From Macrostomum lignano (Eukaryota), in NCBI GenBank assembly GCA_002269645.1, contig NIVC01004971.1:1-29798 (forward strand): a DNA stretch of 29,798 nucleotides. Direction: 5' to 3'. The notes beneath the pieces are model-generated. The model searched no databases, was not told the DNA's origin, and saw nothing but the letters and a program-made list of their open reading frames with translations. Both the position numbers and the translations under genes were made by a program. This document shows, in pieces, positions 3,404-27,841 of this stretch. Position 1 is the first letter of the stretch. Each line of letters begins with the position of its first letter.

Positions 3404-4020
3404 ATTCACTGAATCCACCCCTTCACTGAATCCGCCTTTTCACAGAATCCGCCCCTGCATCGAATCCGCCCCTTCACAGAATCCGCCCCTTCACAGAATC
3501 CGCCCCTTCACAGAATCCACCCCTTCACAGAATCCGCCCCTGCACAGAATCCGCCCCTTCACAGAATCCGCCCCTTCACAGAATCCGACTCTTCACAGAA
3601 TCCGCCCCTTCACAGAATCCGCCCCTTCACAGAATCCGCCCCTTCACAGAATCCGCCCCTTCACAGAATCCGCCCCTTCACAGAATCCGCCCCTTCACAG
3701 AATCCGCCTCTTCACAGAATCCGCCCCTTCACAGAATCCGACTCTTCACAGAATCCGCCCCTTCACAGAATCCGCCCCTTCACAGAATCCACCCCTTCAC
3801 AGAATCCGCCCCTTCACAGAATCCGCCCCTTCACAGAATCCACCCCTTCACAGAATCCGCCCCTTCACAGAATCCGCCTCTTCACAGAATCCGCCCCTTC
3901 ACAGAATCCGACCCTTCACAGAATCCGCCCCTTCACAGAATCCGACCCTTCACAGAATCCGACCCTTCACAGAATCCAACCCTTTACAGAATCCGCCCCT
4001 TCACAAAATCCGCCCCTTTC
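3404..4020. repeat. 17 bp intronic minisatellite (cacagaatccgcccctt) inside the GPCR intron 3307-4041
   Basis: Direct tandem repetition; it generates the spurious ORF 3351..4082. Confidence 0.97.
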
Positions 4021-4041: not shown

Positions 4042-4954
4042 GTATCCCAACCTCATGGACCGCAAGCGAGCCCGGCTACTAGTGGCCGGAGTCTGGGCCC
4101 TGGCCTGCGCCATCAGCCTGCCGACTCTGCTCAAACTGCTGCTCCAGACAGACGCCGATGAGAACGACAGTCTCCGCCGTTCCACCTGGCTAGAGCAGGA
4201 CAAGCGGACAGCCAACGAATCCGTGGGTGATTGCCTGCAGCTCGGACCCACCTGCACCATAGCGCACAGCACCCCCGGCTACATTGTCTATTCAGCGCTC
4301 GGCTCATTCTTCCTGCCCTTCCTCATCATGACCTATTTCTACGCGCACATCTTCGCCGCGGTGCATCGCACTTTGAAGGCCGGCCGTCGTGGCGCCGCCG
4401 AGAACGGCCAGCTCAGGATTCACCGAGGAGGTGGCGGCGGCGGCGGAGGGACCGCTAGCGGAGGCGGCGGCAGCGGAAGTGGCTGCGGAAGAGGAGAGAC
4501 GCTACTTTCGGCTCCAACAGGAAGCGGCGCCGTACCGCGCCAGGCCTCTTGGACAACGCTGGCAGCGACTGCTGCTACTAGGAGAGCGGCGCAGTTCACC
4601 TCTGGCGGCAGGTACGGCCGGGAGCTGAAGGCCGCCCGCATGCTGGCCATCATCTGCATCACCTTTGTCGGCTGCTGGGCCCCCTTTTTCTCTGTCTACC
4701 TGTATGGCGCCGTGTGCCCGGACTGCATCTCCGCCCTGGCCTTCGACATCTGCTTCTGGCTCGGCTACGTGAACAGCGCGCTGAACCCGCTCATCTACGC
4801 GCTGTTCTCTGCCGACTATCGGCGCGCATTCAAGACGCTGATTTTGCGCAGGCGACGCCGCCAGTACGACACAATCGGGACGCTGGCGAGGCGCGGCCTG
4901 CACGGCATGGGGGCGCTGGCGGGTGCCCGGCGGGACCAGCTAAACCAGGGCTGA
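4042..4954 (+). CDS. Octopamine-receptor-like GPCR, coding exon 2 (ICL2-TM7 and C-tail); spliced product ~438 aa
   Basis: Acceptor ccatttccag|g at 4041 restores HPLK-YPNLM in frame; GYIVYSALGSFF (TM5), LRIHRG, RELKAARMLAII, CWAPFF, FWLGYVNSALNPLIYALFS match OAMB-type motifs as I recall them; stop TGA 4952-4954. Confidence 0.93.
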
Positions 4955-6063: not shown

Positions 6064-7400
6064 TTGTTGGAGCTCAGGTCAGCGTTAGGAAGGCGAGGAA
6101 AGCAACCGTTTGGCCTTGGAGACAGAGGATCTAGAAAAGCTGCGCCGCTACTTCCATCGAAGTAGCCCGACTATTTTGCAGCAGGAGGTCTACTATGTAT
6201 TAGCCTTGCAGTTTGGCTTGCGTGGACGCGAACGGTTTCGTAAGCTAACTACGGATTCTATTGAGAGATGCAACATCAATGGGCGACGCGCATTCAGGCT
6301 GGCATCAATGGAAACCAAGACTGTTCGAGGAAGTTTAGAAGAGCGGACCTCAGAAGATAGGAAGCAGAGTGTGATTGTCGAAACCTTTGAAATAGGATGC
6401 CCCTACGAGTGTGTTGAGCTTTACCTGAGCAAGATCGAAGAGGCCAAGAGAAAAGAGGGAGTGTCGAGCTCCGTTGTGTTCATACGTCCCCGAGTACGCG
6501 GCTTTGCAGAGTCGTGGTATTTTGCTAAGCAGGTTGTAGGCGTCAACACTCTTGGGAACATGATGAGTGGCATCTCCAAAGCGGCTAATTTGAGCAAGAT
6601 TTATACTGGCCACTGTCTAAGAGTCACCCTGGCAACCGAGTTGAGTGCAGCTGGAGTGTCCCTGAGGGATATCAGCGCTGTAACGGGACACAAAACTGAA
6701 ACAGCTGCACAAAGGTACATTCGGAACAGCAGAAAGCGTGACGGAGAGATGGCTGGGCTGTCTGTAAGGATCAGTTCCATCGGCGAGGAAAAGAGCGCAA
6801 GGATAGAGAGCCCGCACGACGAGGTGCGTGTGCCGACGCCCGGCTCAGAGGTACCGGCTGATGCCTTGCTACCGGAGACCAGTGCTCAGGCCGATGTGCG
6901 ACAGCAATCATCTACAGCCACGAGGGCTGGAATGGAGATGCAAACGTTGGCTACAGCTATATCGGGCACATTCAACAACTGCCAATTCCACGTGCATATT
7001 TCGAACATGCCTTGATCCGGCGTACAGCTTGGACCGATTTATACTAAATCCGTTGATTGTTTTTTCATATTAAGTTTTTATAATGTTACAACTGCTAAAT
7101 ATAGCATTAAGTAGTTAGCTCAGACGTTGGGTTCGGCCATAGACATTCAAAGCGTGCAACAATCTGGCTTGATTGCTATACCCCTAAAAACCCCTCCAAA
7201 ATGATACAATGAGTGCTGAAGTAATATATATTTGGTGCAGCTCTGGCCTATCATGCCAGTCTGTCTTACTATCGAGCTCTTGGGTTTTTCCTTTAGGGTC
7301 GCAGCCCTTCTATGCACTTCGGCTTTACTGTCGAAGGCTTTACACAGTCTGAGCCATAGACAAAAAGGAAGTGTTAATGCCCAAAAGCTTAAGCCACAAC
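6064..7400 (+). mobile_element. 5'-truncated Crypton (tyrosine-recombinase DNA transposon) fragment
   Basis: Contains the YR ORF plus ~385 bp of 3' region with short hairpins; boundaries are approximate and set by the flanking minisatellites. Confidence 0.72.
6089..7015 (+). CDS. Crypton-type tyrosine recombinase (C-terminal catalytic part; no ATG start)
   Basis: EDLEKLRRYF, FGLRGRE (Arg), ETKT (Lys), YTGHCLR (HxxR), TGHK (His), QRY (Tyr), and C-terminal FNNCQFHV typical of metazoan Crypton/DUF3504-like proteins; frame opens after TAG 6086-6088, which doubles as a possible splice acceptor. Confidence 0.88.
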   Translation, partial: EGEESNRLALETEDLEKLRRYFHRSSPTILQQEVYYVLALQFGLRGRERFRKLTTDSIERCNINGRRAFRLASMETKTVRGSLEERTSEDRKQSVIVETFEIGCPYECVELYLSKIEEAKRKEGVSSSVVFIRPRVRGFAESWYFAKQVVGVNTLGNMMSGISKAANLSKIYTGHCLRVTLATELSAAGVSLRDISAVTGHKTETAAQRYIRNSRKRDGEMAGLSVRISSIGEEKSARIESPHDEVRVPTPGSEVPADALLPETSAQADVRQQSSTATRAGMEMQTLATAISGTFNNCQFHVHISNMP

Positions 7401-7408
7401 ACTCATTA

Positions 7409-7624
7409 CCCCTCTCTCTCTCTCTATCTTTCTCACGCGCATCCTCATCACCCTCTCTCTCTATCTTTCTCACGCGCATCCTCATCACCCTCTCTCTCTA
7501 TCTTTCTCACGCGCATCCTCATCACCCTCTCTCTCTATCTTTCTCACGCGCATCCTCATCACCCTCTCTCTCTATCTTTCTCACGCGCATCCTCATCACC
7601 CTCTCTCTCTATCTTTCTCACGCG
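7409..7624 (+). repeat. 37 bp minisatellite, ~6 copies; right flank of the Crypton
   Basis: Unit spacing of 37 verified (7441 vs 7478). Confidence 0.95.
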
Positions 7625-8329
7625 GATCCCTATAATCCTAAACCTTCCTCAGTCTTACAAGCTCACACAGTTTGGTGAGGTCAACCAGTGCGCACTAGAG
7701 CAGTGCTAATTAATTGAGCGATCGAAAAAATGCCTACACATTTTTAGTTCGAAGTTAGTCTCTCAAATTTGCATTTCATCTTGGCAAAAGTTTTTTTTCG
7801 GTTGGCATTTTGATTGGCCCGAAAAGCTTCAATTTGACCGGCTCCCCCCGTGCGGAAATCCCTGATTCTGGAAGCAATAAATTTGGCGGAAATAACCATC
7901 GCGCGGGCCCTGTCCTGGCCTGATTGGCTAATTTAATTTGCAGAAATTTAGTTTGCACAACCAACTATGATTCCGTTTGGCAAAGGAGCCCAGTTTGATT
8001 GCATGCGCGGGATGAAACATCTAAAAGAAGTGCTAATTTAATTCAAGAAAACAAAGAATTTCCGAAACTGATTAATGCGACTCCGGCAAAATTATAACGC
8101 CAAACTAATTACCCGAGGGTAGTATCCGATATGTTGGGTCATTTTGAGTGACTATTTTACAAGTACAGTACAAGCAATGTATTATGAAAACCGTTGAACA
8201 ACTTATTGATTGAAGAGTTTCACGAATAAAATCTTTTCAAGTCCCTATCATTTTATTTAAATCTGTCGTTGGTTTACCTTTTACCTGAATAAAAAATCTA
8301 CTTCAAATGTATGTATGATCATTCTTTCC

Positions 8330-9135
8330 TTAACCTGCAGTTATTCTACCTCCAATCTGCAGTTATTCTACCTCCAATCTGCCATCATTCTACCTCCAAT
8401 CTGCCGTCATTCTACTTCCACTCTGCCGTCATTCTACCTCCAGTCTGCCGTCATTCTACCTCCAATCTGCCGTCATTCTACCTCCAATCTGCCGTCATTC
8501 TACTTCCACTCTGCCGTCATTCTACCTCCAGTCTGCCGTCATTCTACTTCCACTCTGCCGTCATTCTACCTCCAGTCTGCCGTCATTCTACTTCCACTCT
8601 GCTGTCATTCTACCTCCAGTCTGCCGTCATTCTACTTCCACTCTGCCGTCATTCTACCTCCAGTCTGCCGTCATTCTACCTCCAATCTACCGTCATTCTA
8701 CCTCCAATCTGCAGTTATTCTACCTTTAATATGCATTTGTTCTACCTTTAATATGCAGTTATTCTACCTTCAATCTGCAGTTATTCTACCTCCAATCTGC
8801 AGTTATTCTACCTCCAATCTGCAGTTATTCTACCTCCAATCTGCAGTTATTCTACCTCCAATCTGCAGTTATTCTACCTCCAATCTGCAGTTATTCTACC
8901 TTCAATCTGCAGTTATTCTACCTCCAATCTACCGTCATTCTACCTCCAATTTGCAGTTATTCTACCTCCAATCTGCCGTCATTCTACCTCCAATCTACCG
9001 TCATTCTACCTCCAATCTACCGTCATTCTACCTCCAATCTGCAGTCATTCTACCTCCAATCTACCGTCATTCTACCTCTAATCTGCTGTTATTCTACCTA
9101 CAATCTGCCGTCATTCTACCTCCAATCTGCAGTTA
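8330..9135. repeat. 22 bp minisatellite (ctacctccaatctgc[cgtc/agtt]att)
   Basis: Direct reading; source of ORFs 8311..8751 and 8315..9361. Confidence 0.97.
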
Positions 9136-9654
9136 CTGTGAATCTTCCCAGCTAAGATCTGTGCTGGCTAGACTTTTAGAGAAAATCAGGAGCGGGTCTC
9201 TTCCCAGGGGAGACAGGGAATCAACAGGATCGCTATCCCAATCAGGTTACTACCCTACTCTCCTTCCCCCCGTATCAATTCCCATCGGCTTTGCTCCCAT
9301 GCGTGTGGTCCTGTATCCGAATTCCCATGGGTCTTTTTGGCGAAGACCCATATGCACTTGAGCTACTGTCAGTTATATCTGTGCAATGCAGATGCTAATT
9401 AAGATTTTTACTTGACTGATTTTGTCCCCTACACTAATTGAGGAAGAGGGAGAGAGGGGGACAGAGGGGATGGGCGGAGGGGATCAGAAAGGCCAATTAT
9501 TGAAATTCGCCCGTTCAAATTGCCAATCAGCTACTCTTGGAAAAGGGGGTGAGGGATGAGTTGAGCGTCCAGTCTGTTCGAGTAAATTGTCCCGTCCATG
9601 CCCTCAATCCCCTGGTGCTGCCTCAGACAGCCATGCGGTAGGAGGTTGATGACT

Positions 9655-10247
9655 CTACCGGGGCTGGACATTTTGATAATCTATCGGGGCTGGACATTCT
9701 GATAATCTACCGGGGCTGGACATTTTGATAATCTACCGGGGCTGGACATTCTGATAATCTACCGGGGATGGACATTTTGATAATCTACCGATGATGGACA
9801 TTTTGATAATCTACCGGGGCTGGACATTCTGATAATCTACCGGGGATGGACATTTTGATAATCTACCGGGGATGGACATTTTGATAATCTACCGGGGCTG
9901 GACAGTTTGATAATCAACCGGGGCTGGACAGTTTGATAATCTACCGGGGATGGACATTTTGATAATCTACCGGGGATGGACATTTTGATAATCTACCGGG
10001 GATGGACATTTTGATAATCTACCGGGGCTGGACAGTTTGATAATCTACCGGGGCTGGACAGTTTGATAATCTACCGGGGCTGGACAGTTTGATAATCTAC
10101 CGGGGCTGGACAGTTTGATAATCTACCGGGGCTGGACAGTTTGATAATCTACCGGGGCTGGACAGTTTGATAATCTACCGGGGCTGGACATTTTGATAAT
10201 CTACCGGGGCTGGACAGTTTGATAATCTACCGGGGATGGACATTTTG
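9655..10247. repeat. 26 bp minisatellite, variant A (tctaccggggctggacattttgataa)
   Basis: Direct reading, 26 bp spacing. Confidence 0.97.
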
Positions 10248-11003
10248 AGGGTGGTCTATCGAGAATGGAAATTCTGAAAGTCTATCGGGGATGGACATTC
10301 TGGGAGTCTATCGAGAATGGAAATTCTGAGAGTCTATCGGGGATGGACATTCTGAGAGTCTATCGAGAATGGAAATTCTGAGAGTCTATCGGGGATGGAC
10401 ATTCTGAGAGTCTATCGAGAATGGACATTCTGAGAGTCTATCGGGGATGAACATTCTGAGAGTCTATCGGGGATGGAAATTCTGAGAGTCTATCGGGGAT
10501 GGACATTCTGAGAGTCTATCGGGGATGGACATTCTGAGAGTCTATCGAGAATGGAAATTCTGAGAGTCTATCGAGAATGGACATTCTGAGAGTCTATCGG
10601 GGATGGACATTCTGAGAGTCTATCGAGAATGGAAATTCTGAGAGTCTATCGGGGATGGACATTCTGAGAGTCTATCGAGAATGGACATTCTGAGAGTCTA
10701 TCGGGGATGAACATTCTGAGAGTCTATCGGGGATGGACATTCTGAGAATCTATCGAGAATGGAAATTCTGAGAGTCTATCGGGGATGGACATTCTGAGAG
10801 TCTATCGGGGATGGACATTCTGAGAGTCTATCGAGAATGGAAATTCTGAGAGTCTATCGAGAATGGAAATTCTGAGAGTCTATCGAGAATGGAAATTCTG
10901 AGAGTCTATCGGGAATGGACATTCTGAGAGTCTATCGGGGATGGACATTCTGAGAGTCTATCGGGAATGGACATTCTGAGAGTCTATCGGGAATGGACAT
11001 TTT
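10248..11003. repeat. 26 bp minisatellite, variant B (gagagtctatcggggatggacattct / ...cgagaatggaaattct)
   Basis: Direct reading; related to and contiguous with variant A. Confidence 0.97.
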
Positions 11004-11479
11004 GAAGAACCTATTGTGGAAGCGCTTGGACTTTTATCTCAGACCTCTAGAAACGGAACAACAATCCAGTTTTTTCATTGGTCATCATGCAGCCGTGCAG
11101 CATGCAAATTGTGCAGATTCGGGCCAGTTTGGGATAATGTCCAAGCGCTGCAGACACTTGTTGAACGGCCCACGAGGGGTTCGGAAAGTTGAAAAAGAAG
11201 AAGATCGCGAGGATGCTCAGCCCTCTGCCCCATCTCTCTCTGGCTGAGCAGCGTTGATCAAATCGTCTGTGATTGAATTGTCCGCCATCTAATCCGCCCC
11301 TGGCGCACTTGTGTCCCTCCCTCGCGGCATCTTATTGCCGTGGGCATGAGTTGCTGCTCGACCCTTTAGTCACCCCCGCCACCCCGGCCTCCCCCACCTA
11401 GCCTCAGCCAAGGCGGTCCAGAGCCACAGTCTGGAGTAGCAACTCTCTTCTCTAATCCATAATCAGCACGATTGCAGGA

Positions 11480-11660
11480 GGGCTGCGAACACCCTGGCGA
11501 CATCGTACCACACTCCAGCGCTGAGGCAGCTGACGATCCTGAGCACATACAGGCACACACTCATACACACGCTCACACAGGGTGTACAACTGCCCTGACT
11601 GTCTAATCGTCAGGCATGTACACTCTCTGTGCCTTGGGGGCTGGCTGTCGTGGCACTTTT
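11480..11660 (-). mobile_element. Diverged body of the SINE-like element at 23981-24339
   Basis: Shared ordered blocks caccctggcg, cctgagca, caggcacacactca, gtgtaca...tgtacac, gccttggggg. Confidence 0.7.
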
Positions 11661-12096
11661 AGAATGAAAAATCATCTTAAATCTGTACTGTAATTTTCCT
11701 TTCCCCATAAGGCTTTATCTTACAGTACAAAACAGACAACTCGTGTTGCCATATTTTTTTTTCATTCCTTGACTAATTGTCGATTTTTTCTCCGCGACAT
11801 CAAACGGATCTGGCCAGAGTTCGCTGGCACTCTGAGTTCTAGCTCTGGGTCTTCTTGGCTCAGGCAAGGGGCGCCCAAACTTCTCCTCCCCCGCTCGTCT
11901 CTCTCTCCGCGGCTTTGGGATCCTCCCGAACTAGAGCGAAGTTACTGAACCCTGTAGCTACTGTCACGCTGCAGTTGGCATCTCTTAATACCCCGCGCCC
12001 GGCTCGAGTGCCACTAGGATTTGGAATTATGCCGCCTCCGCCCCCAACTCGCCCTCACTTTTCCCTTTCCTTCGTCCGTTAATTTTCCGGTGTTTT

Positions 12097-12165
12097 GCCC
12101 CAGCCCAGAATCGAACTGAAAGCTTTAACACTCCGCCTGTCAATCTGCCTCTCCCCACTGAGTAA
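12097..12165 (-). mobile_element. Degenerate tRNA-derived head (SINE-like or tRNA pseudogene)
   Basis: Reverse complement has A-box-like ctcagtgg and B-box-like cagttcgattct at tRNA spacing; no intact cloverleaf. Confidence 0.55.
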
Positions 12166-12311
12166 AGTTACTACTTCAGCTAGCTAGAGTGTGGCTGTGC
12201 AAAAATATTTCACTTGAAAGCCTGGCTCAGAGGCCAATCTACAACAGAGTGCATCCAGCATAACAAAAAGTGCGAATTCTAAAATAAATTGTAAGGCCTT
12301 CTTTCTGTTTG

Positions 12312-12935
12312 ACTGCCTACCTGTCTGTGCGTGTGGGTTGGGTGAGGCTTATCGATTTTCTAGCCTGCTCTCTGCCTGCCTGTTCTGATGGGGTGGGCGA
12401 GGCTTATCGATTTTCTAGCCTGCTCTCTGCCTGCCTGTGCGTGTAGGGTGGGTGAGGCTTATCGATTTTCTAGCCTGCCTTCTGCCTGCCTGTGCGTGTG
12501 GGTTGGGTGAGGCTTATCGATTTTCTAGCCTGCTCTCTGCCTGCCTGTTCTGATGGGGTGGGTGAGGCTTATCGGTTTTCTAGCCTGCTCTCTGCCTGCC
12601 TGTGCGTGTAGGGTGGGTGAGGCTTATCGATTTTCTAGCCTGCTCTCTGCCTGCCTGTGCGTGTAGGGTGGGTGAGGCTTATCGATTTACTAGCCTGCTC
12701 TCTGCCTGCCTGTGCTGATGGGGTGGGTGAGGCTTATCGGTTTTCTAGCCAGCTCTCTGCCTGCCTGTGCGTGTAGGGTGGGTGAGGCTTATTGATTTAC
12801 TAGCCTGCTCTCTGCCTGCCTGTGCTGATGGGGTGGGTGAGGCTTATCGGTTTTCTAGCCAGCTCTCTGCCTGCCTGTGCGTGTAGTGTGGGTGAGGCTT
12901 ATCGATTGCCTGGCCTCCTGTCTGCCTGGGTGTAA
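12312..12935. repeat. 55 bp minisatellite, ~11 copies
   Basis: gaggcttatcga recurs every 55 bp (12344, 12399, ...). Confidence 0.96.
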
Positions 12936-13462: not shown

Positions 13463-14863
13463 CGAGGGATGTCATACAGGGCTAGTGAGGCGGATAAGTG
13501 GACTTCGGAGATAATCGCCCTAAGAATCGCGCTCTGAGGCTGGGCATGGCGGTCTGGGAGGATAAAGAGGCGCCACCGCCGTTGACAACAAGAGAATCGA
13601 TTGGGATTCCCCGCCTCAACCCTGCATGCAAAGCAAAGCAAAGCAAAGCTGCATGCACTTTGTTTTTGGCGGGGGTGGCGGGTGGTGGGTTAGCCATATC
13701 TTAAGACTCAAGGATTTCATCTCATTTTCTAGGGTATCAGGGCTTGTACAAGCATTGAGACTCTGCAACAGATTACGAATAGATATTGGCCTATTGCATG
13801 TACGCTCGTAGTTGCTATGCTATGACTTAAAGGCTATGGGAACAGCCAACAATAGCTGTTGAGCATTATCAGTAACAATACTCGTACAATTTATGCCTGA
13901 AAGGCTTGTTTTCCTAACGGAAAAGATGTCAATACTCGCACATGACAGGGAGCTTCGAAAGTGTTGGCTTAAATCATTTTTTAGTGCATTCGACTCGTAT
14001 AACAATTTATTTAATCGATAGCAGTAGAAATGAGACTTAATAATACTTTTAGTATTATTGATCGAAATTAATAAATGTTTAAAATGAAGGGACAATTGTA
14101 CAGGATTCCTTTATATTATTTATTTTTTGACGAGTTTTCCGGTTTTTTTATCTACAATGATTATTTTAATATTTATTTATTATACAGTATTTAAGTACCA
14201 TAATACAATTATAACAGATTAATTTTTTTAAAATCCGTATTATTTACGGATATCTATTAAAATTAATTTATTTAATAAAAAACCCTCAAACGAAAAATTA
14301 AAAACTTTAAAAAATTACATGACTCCGATACAAACAACTGCGGCGCTACCGTGGAGAGAAAAATTATTGAATGACTGAATATTTGAGTTGCTGTTAAAAC
14401 GCATTGACCTAGGCGGTCGCGGGTCAGCCCTTGGGGGGGGCTCTGCCGCAATATATATATTTATAAAAAAATTTAAAACGAGCATTGTATTGTAAATTAA
14501 TTTTCGAAATAGTATTTTACTTAGTATAAAAGGTTTAAAGGTGTAAAACTGTTATTATTGAGTTTGAAAATAAAAGTAAAAGCATATTGGAATAATTTTA
14601 GAAAATTTTTGCTCAAGGAAGGAGAATATTTGAGTTACTATTGAATTGAGTTAATGTTCCGTTATAAGAAAAAAAAGTAGAATTTTATTGATGAAGAAAC
14701 ACATTGATTGCAAATCTGAAGGCTTAGCTAGATATATTTTTATCTGTTAAGATTAAGACTAAGATAATATTTATAAAAATTAGTTCACGGTTGGCTGCCG
14801 TGTCTGAAGCTATTTAGCTGTGTGTTGTTAAGACATCTGGATTAGCAATCCTTTCTTATTCCT

Positions 14864-15988
14864 TCATCCATGGAAAAAATTGACAACAATTTTCTCTTTT
14901 AAGTGGCGGCAAAAAGATCTGAAAATGAAAACAAGAATAACGAACAAAACTTTGATTGTATACTCCGAAACCGAGGCACATGAAGCGGTGTTCTGAAATT
15001 GGCTTGAGCCACCATAGTCAACCGCAGCAATCCAGATGGCAATGGTGCAAATCACGGTACAGCAGACAGCAGCGAAGCATAGGCATGAAAACAACGCGCT
15101 CAGAATGACGATGCCCACTTTTGATAGCATTAACAGACAGCAGTAGACGGTCAATAGAAGTGGATAAATCAAACAGCAAAACGCGGCGATAGAAATGAGT
15201 ATAAAAGCACTTTTACTAAGTTTCTTACCGAATAGCTTTGAGGACCAACTTTCTATTTTCGATTTTGCGAGTGCTTGTGTGTGCTCCGCTAAGGTCTTGA
15301 AATTGATCTCTAAATTGCACTGCACTTTTTTGTGAGCCATATTTAACTTGATCCGCAAATCGCACTGCACTTCTTTGTGAACCATCGCACTCATCTCGCC
15401 AGAAATAAACTTCACCAGGTACCGAGGGGCTGCCTGCTCAGCTCGGTACACAATGTACTCATCGTTGAGTACACCTCCGCTGCTCTTAGTCTTCCGTTTA
15501 GCAAACGCAGAGTCGCAGCCCTCAGCTTGCAGCCGTACAATGCTGAGCCTGGGATCGGCTGCTTTGCAAACCAACGGTTTTCCGATAGCAACATCGCATA
15601 ACAGCAGGTACTTGGCTCCATTGTCGCGACAGTATTGAGCACTCTTGGTGCTATCGGTGGCGAAGTAGATTCCCGGACCGAACATGCCTCCACTACCGAC
15701 CTTGAATCCATCTTCGATAATTTTCTCGGCGTTTTGTTTCGTCGTCCCGTGAAAAAGCAGCTGCGGCTGGCGGTCGCTGGCGTGCAGTTCATTGAGACAG
15801 TTTCTCAGTTTGCGATCCAACTCGGAGTTTTGGATCCTCTCAATCGACTGGATCTGTATTCGGATTCCATGCTCCGGTTTGACATACCGCTCGACTCTGT
15901 CCCGAACTGTCAGATACTCTTGAATTGTGTCGTCACTGGTCTCGGTGAGAAGTTTCCGGCGAACTACTCTGCCTTGTATCTGATCTGG
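14864..15988 (-). CDS. PARP-like ADP-ribosyltransferase (H-Y-E triad) with C-terminal hydrophobic, Cys-rich membrane segments; 5' exon not resolved
   Basis: Frame is open from 15988 (after acceptor ...aatactttttag) to the stop at 14864; QIQSIERIQN, LLFHGT, GMFGPGIYFA, KSAQY, LLLCDVAIG, NDEYIVY..EQAAPRYLV; hydrophobic stretches AFILISIAAFCCLIYPLLLTVYCCLLML, VGIVILSALFSCLCFAAVCCTVICTIAIWIAAV and IKVLFVILVFIF. Confidence 0.88.
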   Translation of the reverse strand, partial: PDQIQGRVVRRKLLTETSDDTIQEYLTVRDRVERYVKPEHGIRIQIQSIERIQNSELDRKLRNCLNELHASDRQPQLLFHGTTKQNAEKIIEDGFKVGSGGMFGPGIYFATDSTKSAQYCRDNGAKYLLLCDVAIGKPLVCKAADPRLSIVRLQAEGCDSAFAKRKTKSSGGVLNDEYIVYRAEQAAPRYLVKFISGEMSAMVHKEVQCDLRIKLNMAHKKVQCNLEINFKTLAEHTQALAKSKIESWSSKLFGKKLSKSAFILISIAAFCCLIYPLLLTVYCCLLMLSKVGIVILSALFSCLCFAAVCCTVICTIAIWIAAVDYGGSSQFQNTASCASVSEYTIKVLFVILVFIFRSFCRHLKEKIVVNFFHG

Positions 15989-16469
15989 CTAAAAAGTATT
16001 ATCAAAGAGAGATCTATGATTAAATTGACTCGGATTGAGACTTTAAGCTCTTCCACACAGCCATCAATTGAAGGCAATTGTAGAGCGATTGATTACATTC
16101 ATACTTCACACATAATCGCAGGAGCAGGCACCCTGGCGCAACGTCTTTGGCGACATCGTCCCACGTTGCACTATACCAGCGCTTTTGATAGGAGGCAGAT
16201 CCAGTGTTGATCTTTTGATATGTTGTGCCTTTCTTATTGCTCCATCGATATTCATAAAGCTTTTCGTTCAGAAATAGTTTTAAAGGGAGGTTTCACCGAA
16301 AAAAATACACTACGGAGATAGGAAATTTCACGATTTTCAACACTAAAACAGTGATTGGGTCTCTTAACAGTGTCAGAGAAAGTTCTAATCACACTATTTT
16401 GTGCCTCACATGCTGCTCTGACGACGCATTAATCGATTTTTTATGTTAAATTGGTCTTATTGGAAAAAA

Positions 16470-16735: not shown

Positions 16736-18414
16736 TAATTTTAAATCTGTAAAGTACTTTTATTGCGTGCTTTGGGTAGCTATACGGATATTTGATTTAA
16801 TGCATGCACGCTCAAGTATTCACCTGACCGGCTGCATCATGCCAGCATTAAATTAATCCATTTCATAAGTTCACATACCTGGGATGCGGGTTGATTACCC
16901 ATGCCGCGATAAAAGTATTCGGACACTTAAATTAAACAAATATTTTGTTGATCATAACTAAAAACAATTAACCGATGGCTAAAGGTATACCTGTCTCTTT
17001 GATGAGTTAGTTCTTCTGCTTACAGTTTATGCAAGTTTTGTTTGGAGCTTGTGCCACAGATTTCCTGTCTTGACTAATAAAACTCTCTCGCAATTATAGA
17101 CTCAAAATTTGTAAAAAAATGTTATCAACTACACTACTTATATACTAAGAAGGTACAAGCCACTAGCCACTGATACTAGAATCGTTTCCCAGTGTACAAC
17201 TTATGCATTTACCTTGCGTACTGTTTCTAAGTCTGTCTAGCTCTAATTGCACGTACGCATTCGTGCAATACAAGGCTACTTTTGTTCGTTGTTTTGTTCG
17301 CCTTTCATTCGTCATGTTATGTGGAACTTCAGTTTTGCTCCAAAGTAATTTGCAGCATCTTTTATGTAATTTTTGTCCTACAAGATTTTGGGTTGCTTGT
17401 CGTAGATAGACGGATTGGAAATCACAGACTTACAGAAGTCAATTTCAATCATATTTGATCGCAGCCAATGTTAAATTGGGCGGAAGTTTTCGTTCTCAAA
17501 GGAACTTAGAATTACAGCTAAATCTTGTGATATCATAAAAACTCATTTGACGGGGTGGTAGCAAAGAAAGGAATGAGAAATTTTGAATGAACTAAATGTA
17601 GAAATTTTTGTATATAGTTGCTACTGTTACTTTCTTACGGAAAAGGATGCTTTAAAGCAAAAAAATTATCGGCCCCTGACAGCTAGCTGGCAGCCACCCC
17701 AAAGATCATATGATCTAGCCCAAGATGTCAGCACCCCTTTGAGAAGTGAAATCTCAGCAATTCCCCCTTGAGCCATGCAAAGGCTACTAAAGTAGAAGGA
17801 CGCAACACTCGAAATCTATGGAAAATGTTTTGAAGGCCACTTTTCCTAACCATGTCCTTTTTGAATGGATGGAGGGAGAGTGTTGGCTGAGGCAGTGCTG
17901 GCAGAGATTTAATCCGATGTGCAGACGATACGCTCTTATTTCCTAGAAGAAAGCAATTAAATAAGATGCCTCTATTATAGGTACAGCAAATTTTATAAAG
18001 CTTATAGACTTTCATTTTGCGCTACTCATAGTAATAGAAGCAGAGCCCGAGTGCCTTTCGATGAGCAGCAGTGCTGGCTGAAGTAAGTGCGCACTGTTTA
18101 TGCTGCTATATGAGCGGAATGACAAATTGAGTAATGAGTCATGCTGCTCACCCTCGCTTCAACTACGAGTATGGCGAAGCGCTCGTGCCCCAGCCTCCTC
18201 TCCGGCTGGCTTTCGAATTAACAAAAATTTCTTTTGAGTTTTCGCCTGCACATCATGCGGGCGGGCCGCGCATTGTTTCTGCTACTAAAATGGAAATTAC
18301 AGCAATTAACGATCCGGCAGAAGCAGTTGAGATGAAGAATGCGCGTAAGTGAACTCATTGAGTCCAAGATATTACTCAGGTACGCTTGTGCTGCAAATTT
18401 GACATGGCGTTCTC

Positions 18415-18876
<462 letters not shown>

Positions 18877-19636: not shown

Positions 19637-20470
19637 GGAGAGCATGAGGGGGAGATGGAGAGCATGAGGGGGAGAGGGAGAGCATGAGGGGGAGATAGAG
19701 AGCATGAGGGGGAGATGGAGAGCATGAGGGGGAGAGGGAGAGCATGAGGGGGAGATAGAGAGCATGAGGGGGAGATGGAGAGCATGAGGGGGAGAGGGAG
19801 AGCATGAGGGGGAGAGGGAGAGCATGAGGGGGGAGATGGAGAGCATGAGGGGGAGTGGGAGAGCATGAGGGGGAGATGGAGAGCATGAGGGGAAGAGGGA
19901 GAGCATGAGGGGGAGAGGGAGAGCATGAGGGGGAGATAGAGAGCATGAGGGGGAGAGGGAGAGCATGAGGGGGAGATGGAGAGCATGAGGGGGAGAGGGA
20001 AAGCATGAGGGGGAGAGGGAGAGCATGAGGGGGAGATGGAGAGCATGAGGGGGAGATAGAGAGCATGAGGGGGAGAGGGAGAACATGAGGGGGAGATGGA
20101 GAGCATGAGGGGGAGATGGAGAGCATGAGGGGGAGATGGAGAGCATGAGGGGGAGAGGGAGAGCATGAGGGGGAGAGGGAGAGCATGAGGGAGAGATGGA
20201 GAGCATGAGGGGGAGAGGGAAAGCATGAGGGGGAGAGGGAGAGCATGAGGGGGAGATGGAGAGCATGAGGGGGAGATAGAGAGCATGAGGGGGAGAGGGA
20301 GAACATGAGGGGGAGATGGAGAGCATGAGGGGGAGATGGAGAGCATGAGGGGGAGATGGAGAGCATGAGAGGGAGAGGGAGAGCATGAGGGGGAGAGGGA
20401 GAGCATGAGGGGGAGATGGAGAGCATGAGGGGGAGATGGAGAGCATGAGGGGGAGAGGGAGAAGAGCATG
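19637..20470. repeat. 20 bp purine-rich minisatellite (agcatgagggggagatggag) in intron 1
   Basis: agcatg at 19641, 19661, 19681, ... Confidence 0.97.
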
Positions 20471-20719: not shown

Positions 20720-21050
20720 GTGTTTCACCTGGTTCCCGGTGTTCACCTGATTCCCGGTGTTCACCTGGTTCCTGGTGTTCACCTGATTCCCGGTGTTCAC
20801 CTGATTCCCGGTGTTCATCTGGTTCCCGGTGTTCACCTGATTCCCGGTGTTCACCTGGTTCCCGGTGTTCACCTGGTTCCCGGTGTTCACCTGGTTCCCG
20901 GTGTTCACCTGGTTCCCGGTGTTCACCTGGTTCCGGTGTTCACCTGATTCCCGGTGTTCACCTGATTCCCGGTGTTCACCTGGTTCCCGGTGTTCACCTG
21001 ATTCCCGGTGTTCACCTGGTTCCCGGTGTTCACCTGGTTCCCAGTGTTCA
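20720..21050. repeat. 18 bp minisatellite (gtgttcacctggttcccg) in intron 2
   Basis: Direct reading. Confidence 0.97.
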
Positions 21051-21091
21051 GCTGTTCACTATCAAACCATTGTCTTCATCAACAACTTCAG

Positions 21092-21419: not shown

Positions 21420-21460
21420 AATTCCCTTGCTAACGAATGCCGGCCTCTCCACTGCCTTAG

Positions 21461-23781
21461 GCGACCGCATCGTGGCGATCCGGGTCGACCTAACAGCTGG
21501 CGAAGCGGCCGACGCGGTCGACCCCGATCATGTGAGCTTCCTGCTCGGCCTGGCCGGTTGCTACGGCCTCACAGTAGAATTCCAGCACCAGCAGCCAGCG
21601 ACTTCAGCCGCCGCCGCCGCCGCCGCCGCCCCGCCGCTGCCGCCGTCAACACCGTTGCGCGAGGCCTCGCGAAGCGTCGCCCTACCATCGATCGTTGTCT
21701 CCGAGGAGGCGCCGGCGCCTGCGCCTACAGGAGGGCCGCGGCTTCTGCTGGCCCGCGGCGGCGGAGTCCCGCAGGCGGCAGCTGGTGGCCAACTCGAGCG
21801 GGCCCTGCTGAACTCCGACTGGACGGAGGCGGAGCCACAGGAAGACGAATGGGTGGCACTGTCGGTGGATCTGATGCTGAAAGAGGAGGCCGACTCGCAC
21901 GCCTACGCTGTCATTGGCGAGGTGGCGGTCCCGAACCTCGACTTGTCGCTGGAACCCGGAGACGAAGGCAAAACCTGGCGCTCGTTGGGTGGCGCCGTTG
22001 AAGACGCGCTGACCGAGTCCACAGGCAGGCGCGGCTCCGCCTCGTCAGGTGGCACCTCGTCAGGCACGGCGAACACCCTGGTGGAGATGCCGCGGCCGCG
22101 CAGCGACGACAGCCTGTCAGCGTCCGGGGATGACGATCTGGACGAGGCCGACCTAGTGGTTCAGGCTGTTAGGAATGCCGACAAAGCGTTGTCGAATGCG
22201 GAATCCGCGGAAGTCGAACCGGAAGTGGAGATTGATGTTGAAGAAAAAGTCGAAGCTGCGGTTGACTTGGCAACTCATGCCGAAGTGGAATTCAATGGGG
22301 AAGTTGAAGTGGGCCTCAGACCGGAAGCTGATGTGGAACTAGAACTCGATTTTGAGAGCCAACCAGAGGTGGAGGCGGAAGTAAAATTCGATGTTGACGT
22401 CCGACCGAAAGTTGATGCGGAAGTGGAGCTGGATGCTAACTTACGACCAGAAGTTGAAGCGGAAGTAGACTTCGGTGTTGATATCCGACCGGAAGTTGAT
22501 GCAGAATTGGAACTTGATGTTGACGTTCGACAGGAGGCGGAAGTAGAATTCGGTGTTGATGTCCGACCGGAAGCGGAAGTAGAATTCGGTGATGTCCGAC
22601 CAGAGGTGGAAGCGGAAGTAGAATTCGATGTTGATGGCCGACCAGAGGTGGGGGCGGAAGTAGAATTCGGTGTTGATGTCCGACCAGAAGCGGAAGTAGA
22701 ATTCGGTGTTGATGTCCGACCGGAAGCGCAAGTAGAATTCGGTGTGATGTCCGACCGGAAGCGCAAGTAGAATTCGGTGTTGATGTCCGACCGGAAGCGC
22801 AAGTAGAATTCGGTGTTGATGTCCGTCCAGAAGCGGAAGTAGAATTCGGTGTTGATGTCCGACCGGAAGCGGAAGTAGAATTCGGTGTTGATGTCCGTCC
22901 AGAAGCGGAAGTAGAAATCGACGCTGATGCAGAAGTTGAAAGGGAATTGGAAGCGGATGCAAAAGTGGAAGTAGAATCGGAAGAAGAAATCGGATCTGAT
23001 ATTGAGATCAAATCGGGCGCTGAAGTAGACCTGGGTGTACAGGCCGAGGCGGAAGTCGACCTGGATGTACATGCTGAGGCGGAAGTCGACCTGGATGTAC
23101 AGGCTGAGGCGGAAGTCGACCTGGATGTACAGGCTGAGGCGGAAGTCGACCTGGATGTACAGGCCGAGGCGGAAGTCGACCTGAATGTACAGGCGGAGCT
23201 GGATTCGGACGCAGAGGAGATCGTAGAGGCCGCAGTCAGCTCGGTGGCGCAGTCGGCGCAGTCAATCAATCTAGAACGGAAGGCGCCCAAACTGGAAGTT
23301 CGAACCGAAGCCCCGGAAGTTAAAGAAGATATTGACGAGATTCAACGAGACGACGACATCGAGGAGGTCTCTATCGATGACGACACGCCGGAAGTCCGCA
23401 GCCTGGATGCGTCAGCGCCGGCTCGCTGGGTAGGCCGGGCCGAGTCCAGCGGCAGCCGCAGCAGCAACGAAAGCATCGACGACAACTCGGACGGAGAGGC
23501 CGGCAGCGACCGCCGGCTGCGAAAGGCAATACGCCAGGCGGCCAGAGCAGTTGAGAAAGATGCCGAAGACGGGGAGGCTGCGGCGGCATCGAGTAAGACG
23601 CCGAACTCTACGCGGGAGAAAACGGCAGAATGGCAAAGTTTGGAGAATCACCCGGTGACCGGAGGCCGGTGGGAGAATCTGGAGAATCGGCCGGTGACTG
23701 GAAGCCAGTGGGAGAATCTGGAGAATCGCCCGGTGACTGGAGGCCGGTGGGAAAACTTAAACAATCTGCCGGTTGATACAG
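21461..23781 (+). CDS. TM-PDZ acidic-repeat gene, exon 4 (C-half of PDZ, 12-aa RPEAEVEFGVDV repeats, 10-aa AEAEVDLDVQ repeats, 13-aa WENLENRPVTG repeats); one apparent -1 frameshift at ~22745
   Basis: Acceptor ctgccttag at 21460 gives G-DRIVAI; ORFs 21427..22770 and 22947..23816 join if one T is restored in ggtgt[t]gat; phase-1 donor G|gtaagt at 23782. Confidence 0.78.
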
Positions 23782-23980
23782 GTAAGTTGCATAATTGTAA
23801 AGTTATAAAGCGATAAAACACAAATTCACCTATTTACCATGCGTTCATTAACAATAATAACTGACAAAAGGAAAGTTCTAAATTTGACATGAAACCTCCA
23901 ATTTAATACTCTCTACTCAATCTGCTTTTACAAGCACCTCAACCGCTAGCCAGCTAACTTCTACACCCACCTCACTCCTT

Positions 23981-24339
23981 TTTTATTAGAGGCAGGGGGG
24001 TTGTGTGCACCCTGGCGCACTTTAAGCGACATAGGCACACAACCGGCGAGAGGCATTACTGCCCATTCCGCCGACTCCCCTGAGCAGGCATGCAAGCGCG
24101 CGGATACGTACGCAGGCACACACTCACACAGGAGTGTACAGCGGCCCTAACTTATTTATCGTTAGGCATGTACACTTCACTGCGCCTTGGGGGGTTGGCT
24201 CTCAAGGCCGTTAATTGCACGAGCAGAGCCAAACCGAGATTCCAATTCAGCCCCAAATTAATGTGAACCTGCACTTGGAATCGAGCCTGGGTCGCTGGCA
24301 CACCAGAGCAGCTGCGCTACCGCTGGGCTACGGCCCCCT
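23981..24339 (-). mobile_element. Apparently full-length ~360 bp tRNA-derived SINE with hairpin-rich body and A-rich tail, in intron 4
   Basis: Minus strand starts gggggccgtagcccagcggtagcgc (A box), ggctcgattcc (B box), ends tctaataaaaaa; flanked by direct repeat ccacctcactcctt (23967-23980, 24340-24353), which is also the local minisatellite unit. Confidence 0.75.
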
Positions 24340-24515
24340 CCACCTCACTCCTTGCACCCGGCTCACTCCTTACACCCACCTCACTCCTTGCACCCACCTC
24401 ACTCACTCCTTGCACCCTCCTCACTCCTTACACCCACCTCATTCCTTACACCCACCTAACTGCAATTACACCCACCTCAAGCCTTACAACCACTTCACTC
24501 CTTACACCCACCCGT
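24340..24515 (+). repeat. 18 bp minisatellite (cacctcactccttacacc)
   Basis: Direct reading; inverted counterpart at 25196-25440. Confidence 0.92.
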
Positions 24516-24620
24516 GTCAACCCACAATAACAAACTGATCCAACTACATCGCTCAGTAACAGAGATAGGTATACACACAACTGACTCTAAAATTAAAAAA
24601 CTAATTGGTTCTCTCCACAG

Positions 24621-25147
24621 TCCAAGAGCCGGAGTTGGCAGCGTCTATCGTACAGCATCCGAAGCCGCAACAGAAAGCGTCCAGAATTCCCCAGCGCTCA
24701 TTAAGCTCAATTCTCAGGGACGTCGAATCCGCAACTGTAGACCTGGTAAATAACGAGGCACAGGCCGCTGCCGCGGCCGCCGCCGAGGACAACCACAGGG
24801 GCGCGGAGTCGCCACCAGTTATCGACGAGACCAACATCAAAGCGACCCAGGCGCCGGTTCCGGTCGTCCAGCTGGACTTTCAGGCGCTGCAGGAGGCGGA
24901 GGACGAGGCGGGCGAGCCCGAGTCGCCGCTGCTGGATCCGGAGCTGGTGCGGGAGATCCAGGCCGGCGCTGAGGGAATCTGGGACGACGATGAGGAGAAC
25001 GGCGTGGAGGAAGGTGACGCTCTCCAGCTGGAGGAGTCGGAGGGCGAACTGTCGGACAGCTTTCAGGAGTTTCTCAACAATGAGGAACTGCTGGAGCAGG
25101 ACGGATTCAGCCGTATGATACGAAAGCTGGAAGAGTCAGACGCCTGA
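24621..25147 (+). CDS. TM-PDZ acidic-repeat gene, last coding exon (acidic tail)
   Basis: Acceptor ttctctccacag at 24620 (phase 1 matches); GC3-rich codons; ends FSRMIRKLEESDA, TGA 25145-25147. The exon sum of 3386 nt plus 1 restored base equals 1129 codons. Confidence 0.76.
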
Positions 25148-26028: not shown

Positions 26029-27020
26029 GAGGATCTGGGGGGGGGGGGCTGGCCCAGCAACTGAGGATCTGGGAGGCTGGCCCAGCAACTGAGGATCTGG
26101 GAGGCTGGCCCAGCAACTGAGGATCTGGGAGGCTGGCCCAGCAACTGAGGATCTGGGAGGCTGGCCCAGCAACAGAGGATCTTGGAGGCTGGCCCAACAA
26201 CTGAGGATCTGGGAGGCTGGCCCAGCAACAGAGGATCTTGGTGGCTGGCCCAGCAACTGAGGATCTGAGAGGCTGGCCCAGCAACTGAAGACCTGGGAGG
26301 CTGGCCCAGCAACTGAGGATCTGAGAGGCTGGCCCAGCAACTGAGGATCTGGGAGGCTGGCCCAGCAACTGAGGATCTGGAAGGCTGGCCCAGCAACTGA
26401 GGATCTGGAAGGCTGACCCAGCAACTGAGGATCTGGAAAGCTGGCCCAGCAACTGAGGATCTGGGAAACTGGCGGACTGAGGATCTGGGAGGCTGGCCCA
26501 GCAACTGAGGATCTGAGAGGCTGGCCCAGCAACTGAAGATCTGGGAGGCTGGCCCAGCAACTGAGGATCTGAGAGGCTGGCCCAGCAACTGAAGACCTGG
26601 GAGGCTGGCCCAGCAACTGAGGATCTGAGAGGCTGGCCCAGCAACTGAAGACCTGGGAGGCTGGCCCAGCAACTGAGGATCTGGGAGGCTGGCCCAGCAA
26701 CTGAGGATCTGAGAGGCTGGCCCAGCAACTGAAGACCTGGGAGGCTGGCCCAGCAACTGAGGATCTGAGAGGCTGGCCCAGCAACTGAAGACCTGGGAGG
26801 CTGGCCCAGCAACTGAGGATCTGGGAGGCTGGCCCAGCAACTGAGGATCTGAGAGGCTGGCCCAGCAACTGAAGACCTGGGAGGCTGGCCCAGCAACTGA
26901 GGATCTGAGAGGCTGGCCCAGCAACTGAAGACCTGGGAGGCTGGCCCAGCAACTGAAGATCTGTGAGGCTGGCCCAGCAACTGAGGATCTGGAAGGCTGG
27001 CCCAGCAACTGAGGATCTGG
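26029..27020. repeat. 28 bp minisatellite (gaggatctgggaggctggcccagcaact), ~35 copies
   Basis: Direct reading; source of the three long minus-strand ORFs at 26002-27125. Confidence 0.98.
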
Positions 27021-27841
27021 AAGGGTGGCAACCCAAATCCGACAAGATAAAAAATCAGAACATGAGCCACGCAAAAGATACAATCGATTTCCCAGCAACA
27101 AAATGGCACAAGAGACACGAGCCAAGTGTATATTTATGAATTTATTATTTCAATTGATAAAAAACACAAAAAACTTTGAGCAGACAGACATCAGCTGTGA
27201 GTATTGGGCACAATAGTATATAATAATCGTGAACCGTATAAACATGAATTTGTGTATAAGACAGATCTATAGCACATCCTAATCTGATGATAATCGTAAA
27301 GCTATTTGGATTTCTAAATATATCGATTGTAGAAATCAGCTTACAATAATGAGTTGTACTTTTCGAAAGCAGAGAATCTAACACAACAGAATCGCAGTGC
27401 AACACGTACGTACCCTGATAGCATCAGTAAAATTGAGTCCAGCTGTCTTAACTAGTGGAAGAGCAGCGATATCTGTAGTGAGCTGATGATGAAACAACGG
27501 AGAACGGGGGGGGGGCGACACGTGGAATGACAAAAACTGTGCTGAAATGTGCAGTACAAATTTGAAACGACAGAACACACGGCACTACACGGGCAGTACG
27601 TTCACACACACAAGAATCTAAAAACGGAAATATTCATCATAAGATATAAAAGCACTAAGCCAAAAAAGTTATTGGAATAAGTTTAATGCCGAAAAAGCGC
27701 AATTATTCTTTTTAGTAGATAAAAAGTGATGATTTTCATCAAGTACTTTGCAGGTTTGCCGCTACAGTCTGGAACGAGATCGTTAGTTGGCCTGTAAAAC
27801 AAAATGGAAAAACAATACGTCTGTTAGTGTTTTTGATATGC

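Follow-up and report, generated by a model that had tools for sequence, protein, structure and literature searches.

On the minus strand of a 29,798-nucleotide stretch of the flatworm Macrostomum lignano genome (contig NIVC01004971.1 of assembly GCA_002269645.1, positions 1 to 29,798; hereafter the window) lies a gene whose last coding exon joins a PARP catalytic domain to a long, cysteine-rich hydrophobic tail. We favour, as the probable reading, that this is an unannotated M. lignano gene belonging to a family of minimal, single-domain PARPs and that its product is a membrane-anchored enzyme.

The minus-strand frame 15988..14867 comprises 374 sense codons, is closed by a TGA at 14866-14864 and encodes, in this order, the PARP domain, a linker and the hydrophobic tail. 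An earlier interpretation made from the letters of the window (the sequence-only reading) had described an uninterrupted exon of 1.1 kb with H-Y-E motifs, a duplicated linker and Cys-rich hydrophobic segments, and all of these features are indeed present in the one open frame of 14864-15988. Homology to paralogous proteins starts at exon residue 6 (residues are numbered from the start of the exon). Since the exon offers no methionine before residue 102 and its frame is closed upstream by the TAG of the predicted splice acceptor, it must be part of a spliced gene (an internal exon or the last one), for which an upstream first exon is needed, as the sequence-only reading had anticipated. The exon is contained in no protein of a collection of 5.8 billion proteins, which holds the proteins from both public M. 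lignano annotations, and the gene is therefore unannotated.

A PARP domain with an intact active site

Residues 23-194 match the PARP catalytic domain profile PF00644 with an E-value of 1.4e-29 (103.5 bits versus a cut-off of 26.7), the match extending over profile positions 2-197 of 199; this profile comparison bears out the assignment that had been proposed from the letters. The residues of the proposed H-Y-E triad, His80, Tyr108 and Glu177, fall on the triad positions of tankyrase-2 and PARP4, and Gly81, Ser116 and Tyr119 (TKSAQY) align with NAD+-pocket residues of the same two enzymes. In an alignment of eight family sequences H80, G81, Y108, K115, S116, D176 and E177 are invariant, and 49 of the 51 positions that are identical across all seven relatives are kept in the window protein, the two changes being L>I and V>A, a record equal to that of the annotated paralogues. 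With its catalytic residues intact, and with paralogue-like conservation at only 59% identity to the nearest paralogue, the domain was under constraint for most of its history, and its sequence indicates that it is not decaying.

A sequence search of the PDB returned PARP4 as the best match (E = 2.1e-10, residues 16-195), with tankyrase-1/2 at approximately 4e-10 and PARP2, PARP1 and PARP3 following; the best 60 of the 87 matches were PARP4, tankyrase and PARP1-3. In an AlphaFold2 (AF2) model computed with the family alignment as input, the predicted local distance difference test score (pLDDT) is approximately 90 in the PARP domain, and the best Foldseek matches of this model are the ADP-ribosyltransferase (ART) domains of tankyrase-1, PARP1 and PARP4 (probability 1.00, E of approximately 1e-12, target-normalised TM-score up to 0.68). 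A Pfam scan of the exon revealed no WGR (PF05406), helical regulatory (PF02877), ankyrin or SAM domain.

On account of the glutamate the sequence-only reading had termed the enzyme polymerase-type. The H-Y-E triad is necessary but not sufficient for chain making, as PARP3 and PARP4 carry the Glu yet only mono-ADP-ribosylate (PMC9027952), and Glu177 is consequently no proof of polymerase activity.

A family of minimal PARPs in M. lignano

The gene is a member of a family that comprises, in M. lignano, at least eight paralogue groups with a minimal PARP domain. Its closest relatives among PARPs are six M. lignano clusters, P0001-P0006 (UniRef A0A1I8H7A7, A0A1I8G268 and A0A1I8GHB6; BOX15_Mlig016183g2, Mlig001219g1 and Mlig002508g1), which share 54-59% identity with the catalytic half of the query only. 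Two metagenome-derived proteins (P0007 and P0008), encoded on contigs of approximately 1 kb or less, come next at 42-44% identity. The nearest relatives thus all being M. lignano paralogues, the suggestion that the gene is lineage-specific stands.

The six clusters resemble the window gene in possessing the same H-Y-E triad and NAD+ pocket, a domain that is uninterrupted in the last exon, a moderate GC content at third codon positions (GC3) and an AT-rich 3' flank. Unlike the window gene, they have neither linker nor hydrophobic tail, all of them ending 1-8 residues past ...RYL(V/I)KF, and some of their members possess a Cys/His motif and long coiled regions at the N-terminus, features that the upstream part of the window lacks. 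This motif (FRCGHTE...FCSSCW) precedes the PARP domain in the long family members. The P0002 gene (locus L001, approximately 11290-12513) has an in-frame intron of about 100 nt immediately before NDELRTFRCGH.

The only relative with a C-terminal extension is BOX15_Mlig006965g1-3 (PAA67678.1, PAA79676.1 and PAA57412.1; P0136-P0138), a 261-residue PARP-domain paralogue at locus L002, which continues for 50 residues past the domain (...RYLVTFRSSRSTGVMLDKAVQCEGVATSLPGLITLIVDLVLDIMRSFRKRKKTKRS). After the domain it displays M-x-x-K-x-V-Q-C, a hydrophobic helix (LPGLIT...LIVDLVLDIM) and an RSF plus polybasic end, in the same order as in the window tail. Its extension of 50 residues contrasts with the 179 of the window protein, and it contains one weakly hydrophobic helix with two Asp as opposed to three long Cys-rich helices. 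At 43-44% identity, its domain has the catalytic His-Gly replaced (LLSFYTT) and has lost the pocket Ser and Tyr, with the Tyr and Glu of the triad kept, and the protein is probably an inactive pseudo-PARP. As P0136 has lost these residues, the window gene is the only member seen in which an intact active site is combined with a C-terminal hydrophobic extension. The intron of BOX15_Mlig006965 contains a tandem repeat.

Four family members are located on one 286-kb M. lignano contig, and the paralogues with first exons starting in MG (see below) may constitute a membrane-targeted mini-PARP family. Full-text literature searches retrieved no description of flatworm mini-PARPs, of the architecture found in the window and its local origin, or of MG mini-exons.

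The linker and the hydrophobic tail

Past ...RYLVKF, where the six clusters end, the frame of the window gene runs without a stop into an extension of 179 residues. It begins with a linker in which the sequence-only reading had noticed an internal duplication, and this proved to be a true tandem duplication of 45 nt, its copies being 82% identical and encoding MVHKEVQCDL (15356-15385) and MAHKKVQCNL (15311-15340), with the common motif M-x-H-K-x-V-Q-C. Downstream of a predicted charged linker helix, Kyte-Doolittle values over 19-residue windows exceed 1.6 at residues 256-327 and 335-363. The three Cys-rich hydrophobic helices in this part (residues 259-287, 292-325 and 336-373), which substantiate the hydrophobic segments of the sequence-only reading, cover approximately 115 residues as a 72-residue block followed by the third helix, and the tail holds 13 Cys in total, among them three CC pairs. 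Helix 2, with 34 residues, could cross the membrane once or bend. Going by the hydropathy profile and the predicted structure, the tail probably spans a membrane. The hydrophobic region is flanked by basic residues, KKLSK ahead of it and RHLKEK behind it, which would speak for hairpins or for crossings that are even in number.

The tail is probably coding. Its own frame contains no stop over the 179 codons, compared with 4-14 stops in the other five frames, and only 3 of 20,000 dinucleotide-preserving shuffles were equally stop-free (a chance of about 1.5e-4). On the coding strand, T accounts for 38% of the hydrophobic part; de novo membrane segments from T-rich DNA have been documented in yeast, and TM-like (transmembrane-like) peptides are known to appear when non-genic DNA of such composition is translated (PMC7005711).

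Homologues of the tail were sought by several routes. A word-index search of the 5.8 billion proteins yielded none at E<=10, an exhaustive HMMER search against 1.84 billion representative proteins gave no credible match, and tblastn against the paralogue loci L001-L004 gave nothing convincing. The sole HMMER match (E = 7e-4), to a bacterial repeat protein, was rejected as spurious, as it matches only through 'VWIAAV' repeats.

Alignments to P0136 continue past the domain, to 15359 with tblastn and to 15360 with blastn, and copy 1 of the duplication (MVHKEVQCD) is homologous to MLDKAVQCE at the corresponding place of P0136. In a MAFFT alignment LPGLIT of P0136 is placed against YPLLLT of the tail, and the C-terminal ...LIVDLVLDIMRSFRKRKKTK of P0136 against ...VLFVILVFIFRSFCRHLKEK of the window protein; the end of helix 3 accordingly resembles the P0136 C-terminus (...DIMRSFRKRKKTK). 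Both ends of the tail thus match the P0136 extension in the same frame and order, with a chained score of 58 versus 37.8 +/- 4.0 in shuffled sequences, none of 300 of which reached it. According to these alignments the tail is not an entirely new sequence, since the paralogue BOX15_Mlig006965 carries both of its ends in short form.

The first exon

The short paralogues P0005, P0006 and P0136 possess tiny phase-0 first exons, encoding MGNCYSKRRST, MGLFHSKRHLV and MGNHVAIPDPAYDTCTLP, respectively, which are followed by introns of 96-447 nt. The N-myristoylation pattern G-{EDRKHPFYW}-x(2)-[STAGCN]-{P} derives from N-myristoyltransferase substrates, and the N-termini of these three proteins look like N-myristoylation sites by this pattern; in P0005, moreover, position 4 is a Cys, and MGNC resembles a palmitoylation site too.

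ATG-initiated frames ending at a phase-0 GT were scanned for over the 2.4 kb upstream of the acceptor. The exon ATGGGTAATCAACCCGCATCCCAG/GTATGT (a slash denotes a splice junction) is the only candidate with an MG start and has the best donor score of this region; it is in phase 0 with the acceptor at 15989, from which an intron of 890 nt would separate it. Its predicted product, MGNQPASQ, fits the N-myristoylation pattern, and it is our preferred candidate because it repeats the family design of mini first exons, a phase-0 MGN... exon being present in BOX15_Mlig006965 too. The sequence-only reading had proposed a different first exon (ATG at 16255, donor at 16111), which is in phase and possible; its donor is weak, however, and MGNQPASQ fits better. 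No upstream exon was detected by homology when the N-terminal parts of all relatives were compared with the window by tblastn, and alignment of the candidate first-exon region with first exons and promoters of the paralogues gave no usable similarity. A signal peptide is apparent neither in the exon nor in the two candidate first exons.

Relation to known PARPs and to Gig2

The ART domain of tankyrase 1/2 (PARP clade 4) provides the best fold match and a near-best sequence match, and like the window protein it has the H-Y-E triad and a donor loop that is short and ends in GGMFGxGIYFA, and lacks a helical regulatory domain. In contrast to tankyrase, the window gene has no ankyrin repeats or SAM domain, the identity is only 23-26%, and in the PDB sequence alignment the Cys/His zinc-binding insertion of tankyrase has no counterpart, facing either a gap or residues unrelated to it; nor are tankyrases membrane proteins. 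The ART domain of PARP4 (vault PARP), the best sequence match among solved structures, likewise has H-Y-E; PARP4 is a protein of 1,724 residues with BRCT, VIT and vWA regions and no membrane segment. From the PARP1/2/3 group (clade 1) the window gene differs in that its exon encodes neither a WGR nor a helical regulatory domain, the ART domain starting 22 residues past the splice acceptor and tblastn having found no homologous exon upstream.

PARP16 (ARTD15, clade 6) possesses a single C-terminal TM segment, an N-terminal helical domain and no catalytic Glu, and is conserved across animals. It is tail-anchored in the endoplasmic reticulum, where a hydrophobic anchor at its C-terminus tethers an ART domain that faces the cytosol (PMC4245714), which is the arrangement predicted for the window protein. 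The latter nonetheless differs from PARP16 in its Glu177, in its three hydrophobic helices over approximately 115 residues rather than a single TM segment and in its tail without relatives. PARP16 was not among the best 60 of the 87 PDB matches, which revealed no closest affinity to PARP6, PARP8 or PARP16. As the accessory features of tankyrase, PARP1-3, PARP4 and PARP16 are not found in it, the window protein is not an orthologue of any of these.

A PARP domain combined with a membrane segment is not a new idea and has arisen repeatedly: Perina et al. (2014) noted clade-3 PARPs with TM segments in Rhizaria and one in a sponge, its TM segment being N-terminal (PMC4245714); these proteins differ from the window gene in the position of the segment (N-terminal), in clade and in lineage. 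The sequence-only reading had also seen a likeness to Gig2, the interferon-induced proteins of fish and amphibians. These too form a lineage-expanded family of small PARP-like proteins; they are, however, reported to be restricted to non-amniote vertebrates, without invertebrate homologues, and to have very weak PARP homology and a conserved C-terminal domain of their own (PMC3617106), whereas the window protein gives a strong canonical PF00644 match and has a tail without homologues. The GGMFGxGIYFA loop on which the likeness was based is a generic PARP signature that also occurs in tankyrase, and the resemblance to Gig2 was not upheld.

Proposed mode of action

We propose that the protein would bind NAD+ through its conserved pocket and, by means of Glu177, transfer ADP-ribose to membrane-adjacent targets, these roles being assigned by homology; either mono-ADP-ribose or short chains would be allowed as product. 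As no signal peptide is evident, the catalytic domain should be cytosolic, and it would be held at the membrane by the hydrophobic helices of the C-terminal tail, which contain numerous cysteines that may be palmitoylated. A myristoylated N-terminal Gly contributed by the mini first exon (MGNQPASQ) would probably serve as a second attachment, as it may in the three paralogues. As to the origin of the tail, an ancestral short extension comprising the motif, one hydrophobic helix and a polybasic end (as in BOX15_Mlig006965) would have been enlarged in the window gene by the 45-nt duplication and approximately 100 residues of new hydrophobic sequence. Since this added part has no relatives and its coding strand is T-rich, it probably arose locally.

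Base composition

Following the stop codon (14063-14863) GC falls to 0.28, compared with 0.33-0.35 in the 800 nt downstream of four paralogous genes. The AT-rich island described in the sequence-only reading therefore exists as an AT-rich flank, but it is not special, such flanks being usual downstream of the paralogues. In the same manner, the GC3 contrast with neighbouring genes is real, the receptor gene nearby having a value of 0.78 and the PARP part and the tail values of 0.58 and 0.49, respectively, but it is a trait of the family (0.50-0.63 in the paralogues). The compositional contrast between the gene and its neighbours comes from the rest of the window, which abounds in GC-rich minisatellites and contains this GC3-rich receptor gene.

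Alternative explanations

Several observations weigh against a membrane-anchored enzyme encoded by a functional gene. In a codon-usage frame test trained on approximately 1,500 M. lignano codons, the PARP part scores 0.139 versus -0.03 and -0.13 in the other frames; the tail scores 0.002 versus -0.096 and -0.082, which is no better than one antisense frame. The pLDDT in the tail is 58-75, BLASTP of the tail against the P0136 extension gives no match, and each of the motifs shared with P0136 is insignificant when taken singly, the score being reached by 261 of 5,000 shuffles. The first exon is a prediction from the genomic sequence, neither public M. lignano annotation has a gene model at the locus, and the gene, being unannotated, may be weakly expressed or silent. 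Furthermore, the tail contains a consensus donor, TTCG/GTAAGA (intron from 15228), and a polypyrimidine acceptor, tttcag/ (exon from 14918), a pair which could remove most of the hydrophobic block. This pair with its strong donor, the weak codon-usage signal of the tail, the six paralogue clusters that end shortly after the domain and the merely 50 residues of the P0136 extension would all suit a gene that is real but whose hydrophobic block is spliced out or retained in a minor isoform only, leaving a soluble or peripheral mini-PARP like the paralogues. Use of the pair would, however, shift the frame (to ...KLFDLFAAT and a stop) and so destroy the C-terminal RSF..K.K motif common to P0136, and it would have to be a coincidence that a 103-codon intron is stop-free in the frame of the exon when the paralogue introns contain stops; we regard such splicing as unlikely. 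The absence of a gene model and of an upstream exon found by homology, together with a tail that lacks relatives in either protein search and has a lower GC and a weaker coding signal, could alternatively mean that the locus is a duplicate which is silent or in decay, its PARP exon being an orphan without a working first exon or promoter, in which the stop was lost and the frame runs by accident into the flank. Against such decay stand a PARP domain that is conserved like those of expressed paralogues and has lost no catalytic residue although its identity to the nearest of them is only 59%, the small chance of a stop-free run of this length, the in-frame resemblance of the tail ends to P0136 and the paralogue-like MG mini-exon with its good donor upstream, so that we give this explanation a low probability.

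That the gene is the cargo of a mobile element, or an ADP-ribosyltransferase acquired from bacteria or viruses and lodged in an AT-rich island, as the sequence-only reading had suggested, appears to us very improbable. The GC minimum of the window does lie directly past the PARP gene, a Crypton-like tyrosine-recombinase frame is found 8 kb away, and in the word-index search the flatworm and metagenome relatives are followed by bacterial WGR-PARP proteins (E of approximately 1e-10). A repeat search nevertheless revealed no terminal or direct repeats flanking the gene, inverted ones included, and no transposon ends around it. Paralogues at several other loci have spliceosomal introns, equal GC3 and AT-rich 3' flanks. 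Viral PARPs (giant-virus and phage models of the structure library) are at most 24% identical to the window protein and hence no closer than the human PARPs (22-26%), and the bacterial hits are an artefact of word-index sensitivity, since in the PDB sequence and fold searches the eukaryotic enzymes tankyrase, PARP4 and PARP1 come out no more distant. We retain, as the probable explanation, a gene of the M. lignano mini-PARP family that encodes a membrane-anchored enzyme.

Features of the locus and of the remainder of the window

The coordinates of the PARP gene, of the two-exon paralogues and of the minisatellite arrays are collected in Table 1.

Table 1. Features of the PARP gene in the window and of its two-exon paralogues (positions refer to the window unless a locus is named; aa, exon residues; slash, splice junction)
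Feature	Position	Strand	Basis or remark
Main (last) coding exon	14864..15988	-	374 sense codons plus TGA at 14864-14866; the AG at 15989-15990 is followed by an open frame up to this stop
Predicted splice acceptor, ttgataatactttttAG/CCA	15989..16005	-	sequence; the upstream frame ends at the TAG of this acceptor
PARP/ARTD catalytic domain (aa 23-194)	15407..15922	-	PF00644
FHGT (aa 79-82), catalytic His80 and Gly81 (NAD+ binding)	15743..15754	-	aligned to the His of tankyrase and PARP4; family-invariant
GIYFA (aa 106-110)	15659-15673	-	within the PF00644 match
GIYFATDSTKSAQY, Tyr108, Ser116 and Tyr119 of the nicotinamide pocket	15632..15673	-	aligns with tankyrase GIYFAENSSKSNQY
NDEY (aa 175-178), catalytic Glu177	15455..15466	-	aligns with the Glu of tankyrase-2 'LAEY' and of PARP4 'DDEF'
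45-nt tandem duplication, two copies 82% identical	15297..15385 (copies 15342-15385 and 15297-15340)	-	repeat search, translation
Long linker helix, charged, amphipathic, predicted (aa 203-253)	15230..15382	-	AF2, pLDDT of approximately 60-67
Hydrophobic helix 1 (aa 259-287), CC pairs at 271 and 283	15128..15214	-	Kyte-Doolittle >1.6; AF2
Hydrophobic helix 2 (aa 292-325), six Cys	15014..15115	-	Kyte-Doolittle; AF2
Helix 3 (aa 336-373), core VLFVILVFIF, then basic end RSFCRHLKEK (IFRSFCRHLKEK = 14891-14926)	14870..14983	-	Kyte-Doolittle; AF2
Preferred candidate first exon, ATG GGT AAT CAA CCC GCA TCC CAG (MGNQPASQ), and donor CAG/GTATGT	16877..16902 (coding 16902-16879)	-	inferred
Alternative candidate first exon (sequence-only reading), 48 codons MNIDG...CSCDY, donor TAT/GTGTGA at 16111, 123-nt intron	16110..16255	-	inferred
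AATAAA, possible polyadenylation signal	14684..14689	-	sequence only; 174 nt past the stop
P0005, two-exon paralogue gene	L003 6001-6786
P0006, two-exon paralogue gene	L004 6001-6891
P0136, two-exon paralogue gene	L002 19122-20354	-	M. lignano contig NIVC01001462.1
Minisatellite arrays	1-721, 7416-7629, 8335-9130, 9654-11005, 12320-12928, 18415-18876, 19637-20462, 20724-21054, 26043-27029, 28267-28463, 29548-29798

Antisense to the PARP exon, an open reading frame (ORF) of 191 codons without Pfam match occupies 15635-16210 (+), and is most likely a chance by-product of the coding exon on the opposite strand. A direct similarity of 22 nt (19/22) links 14850-14871, across the stop codon, with 16228-16249, at the start of the first exon proposed by the sequence-only reading (ATGGATGAAGGAATAAGAAAGG and ATCGATGGAGCAATAAGAAAGG); it is probably due to chance, the repeat tool itself flagging short two-copy matches as often fortuitous. 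Scans for tRNA genes and Rfam families gave no matches.

The neighbouring receptor is a rhodopsin-family G-protein-coupled receptor (GPCR; PF00001) encoded by two exons (2843-3310 and 4055-4954, plus strand) and closest to arthropod octopamine/tyramine receptors. Its second exon (4055-4954) shares 99% identity with an M. lignano protein in UniRef, which identifies the window as M. lignano DNA, and the intron of the receptor gene consists mostly of a 17-nt minisatellite (3405-4018, 36 copies). An allelic or homeologous copy of the locus, sought via this GPCR protein, is not on record. A 301-codon ORF at 6110-7015 (+), about 8 kb from the PARP gene, matches Phage_integrase (E = 1e-9) and DUF3504 (E = 5e-8) and is a Crypton-like or domesticated tyrosine-recombinase sequence; no link between it and the PARP gene was found. 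Minisatellite arrays are exceptionally dense in the window, with periods of 4-55 nt and up to 115 copies, and in several frames they produce long ORFs that are spurious; a stretch free of repeats, from approximately 13.0 to 18.4 kb, harbours the PARP gene. Long GC-rich ORFs at 21427-25147 (+), very acidic and rich in repeats (EVE(A/F)... units of 36-78 nt) and with no Pfam family above threshold, probably represent a multi-exon gene for a low-complexity acidic protein.

Implications

A PARP domain with a Cys-rich hydrophobic tail is an unusual combination, seen here in one species. To our knowledge, PARP16, a mono-transferase without the catalytic Glu, is the only human PARP with a transmembrane anchor. 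It is possible, although we would not expect every part of it to hold, that the window gene encodes the first multi-pass or hairpin PARP with a complete H-Y-E triad and a double tether of lipid and TM segments, specific to flatworms and writing ADP-ribose, possibly as chains, at the cytosolic face of a membrane, with a recent anchor composed of an ancestral short amphipathic/polybasic tail and de novo T-rich sequence, and that it forms part of a mini-PARP arsenal, with MG-myristoyl exons and polybasic tails, that diversified in Macrostomum. A fast-diversifying family of membrane-targeted paralogues is suggestive of a putative role in stress, in immunity and defence or in signalling, with which it would fit.

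Should the tail not be translated, the locus would add one more unannotated paralogue to a species-specific PARP expansion. If the membrane-anchored reading is correct, a PARP with a full H-Y-E triad in a membrane would represent a natural test of what ADP-ribosylation at membranes does, and of whether a tethered ART domain without a helical domain makes chains, in a regeneration model that is amenable to transgenesis. The locus would furthermore offer a fairly clean case of a soluble enzyme family gaining membrane targeting in three ways, namely through a myristoylation mini-exon, a polybasic tail and an orphan TM-like extension.

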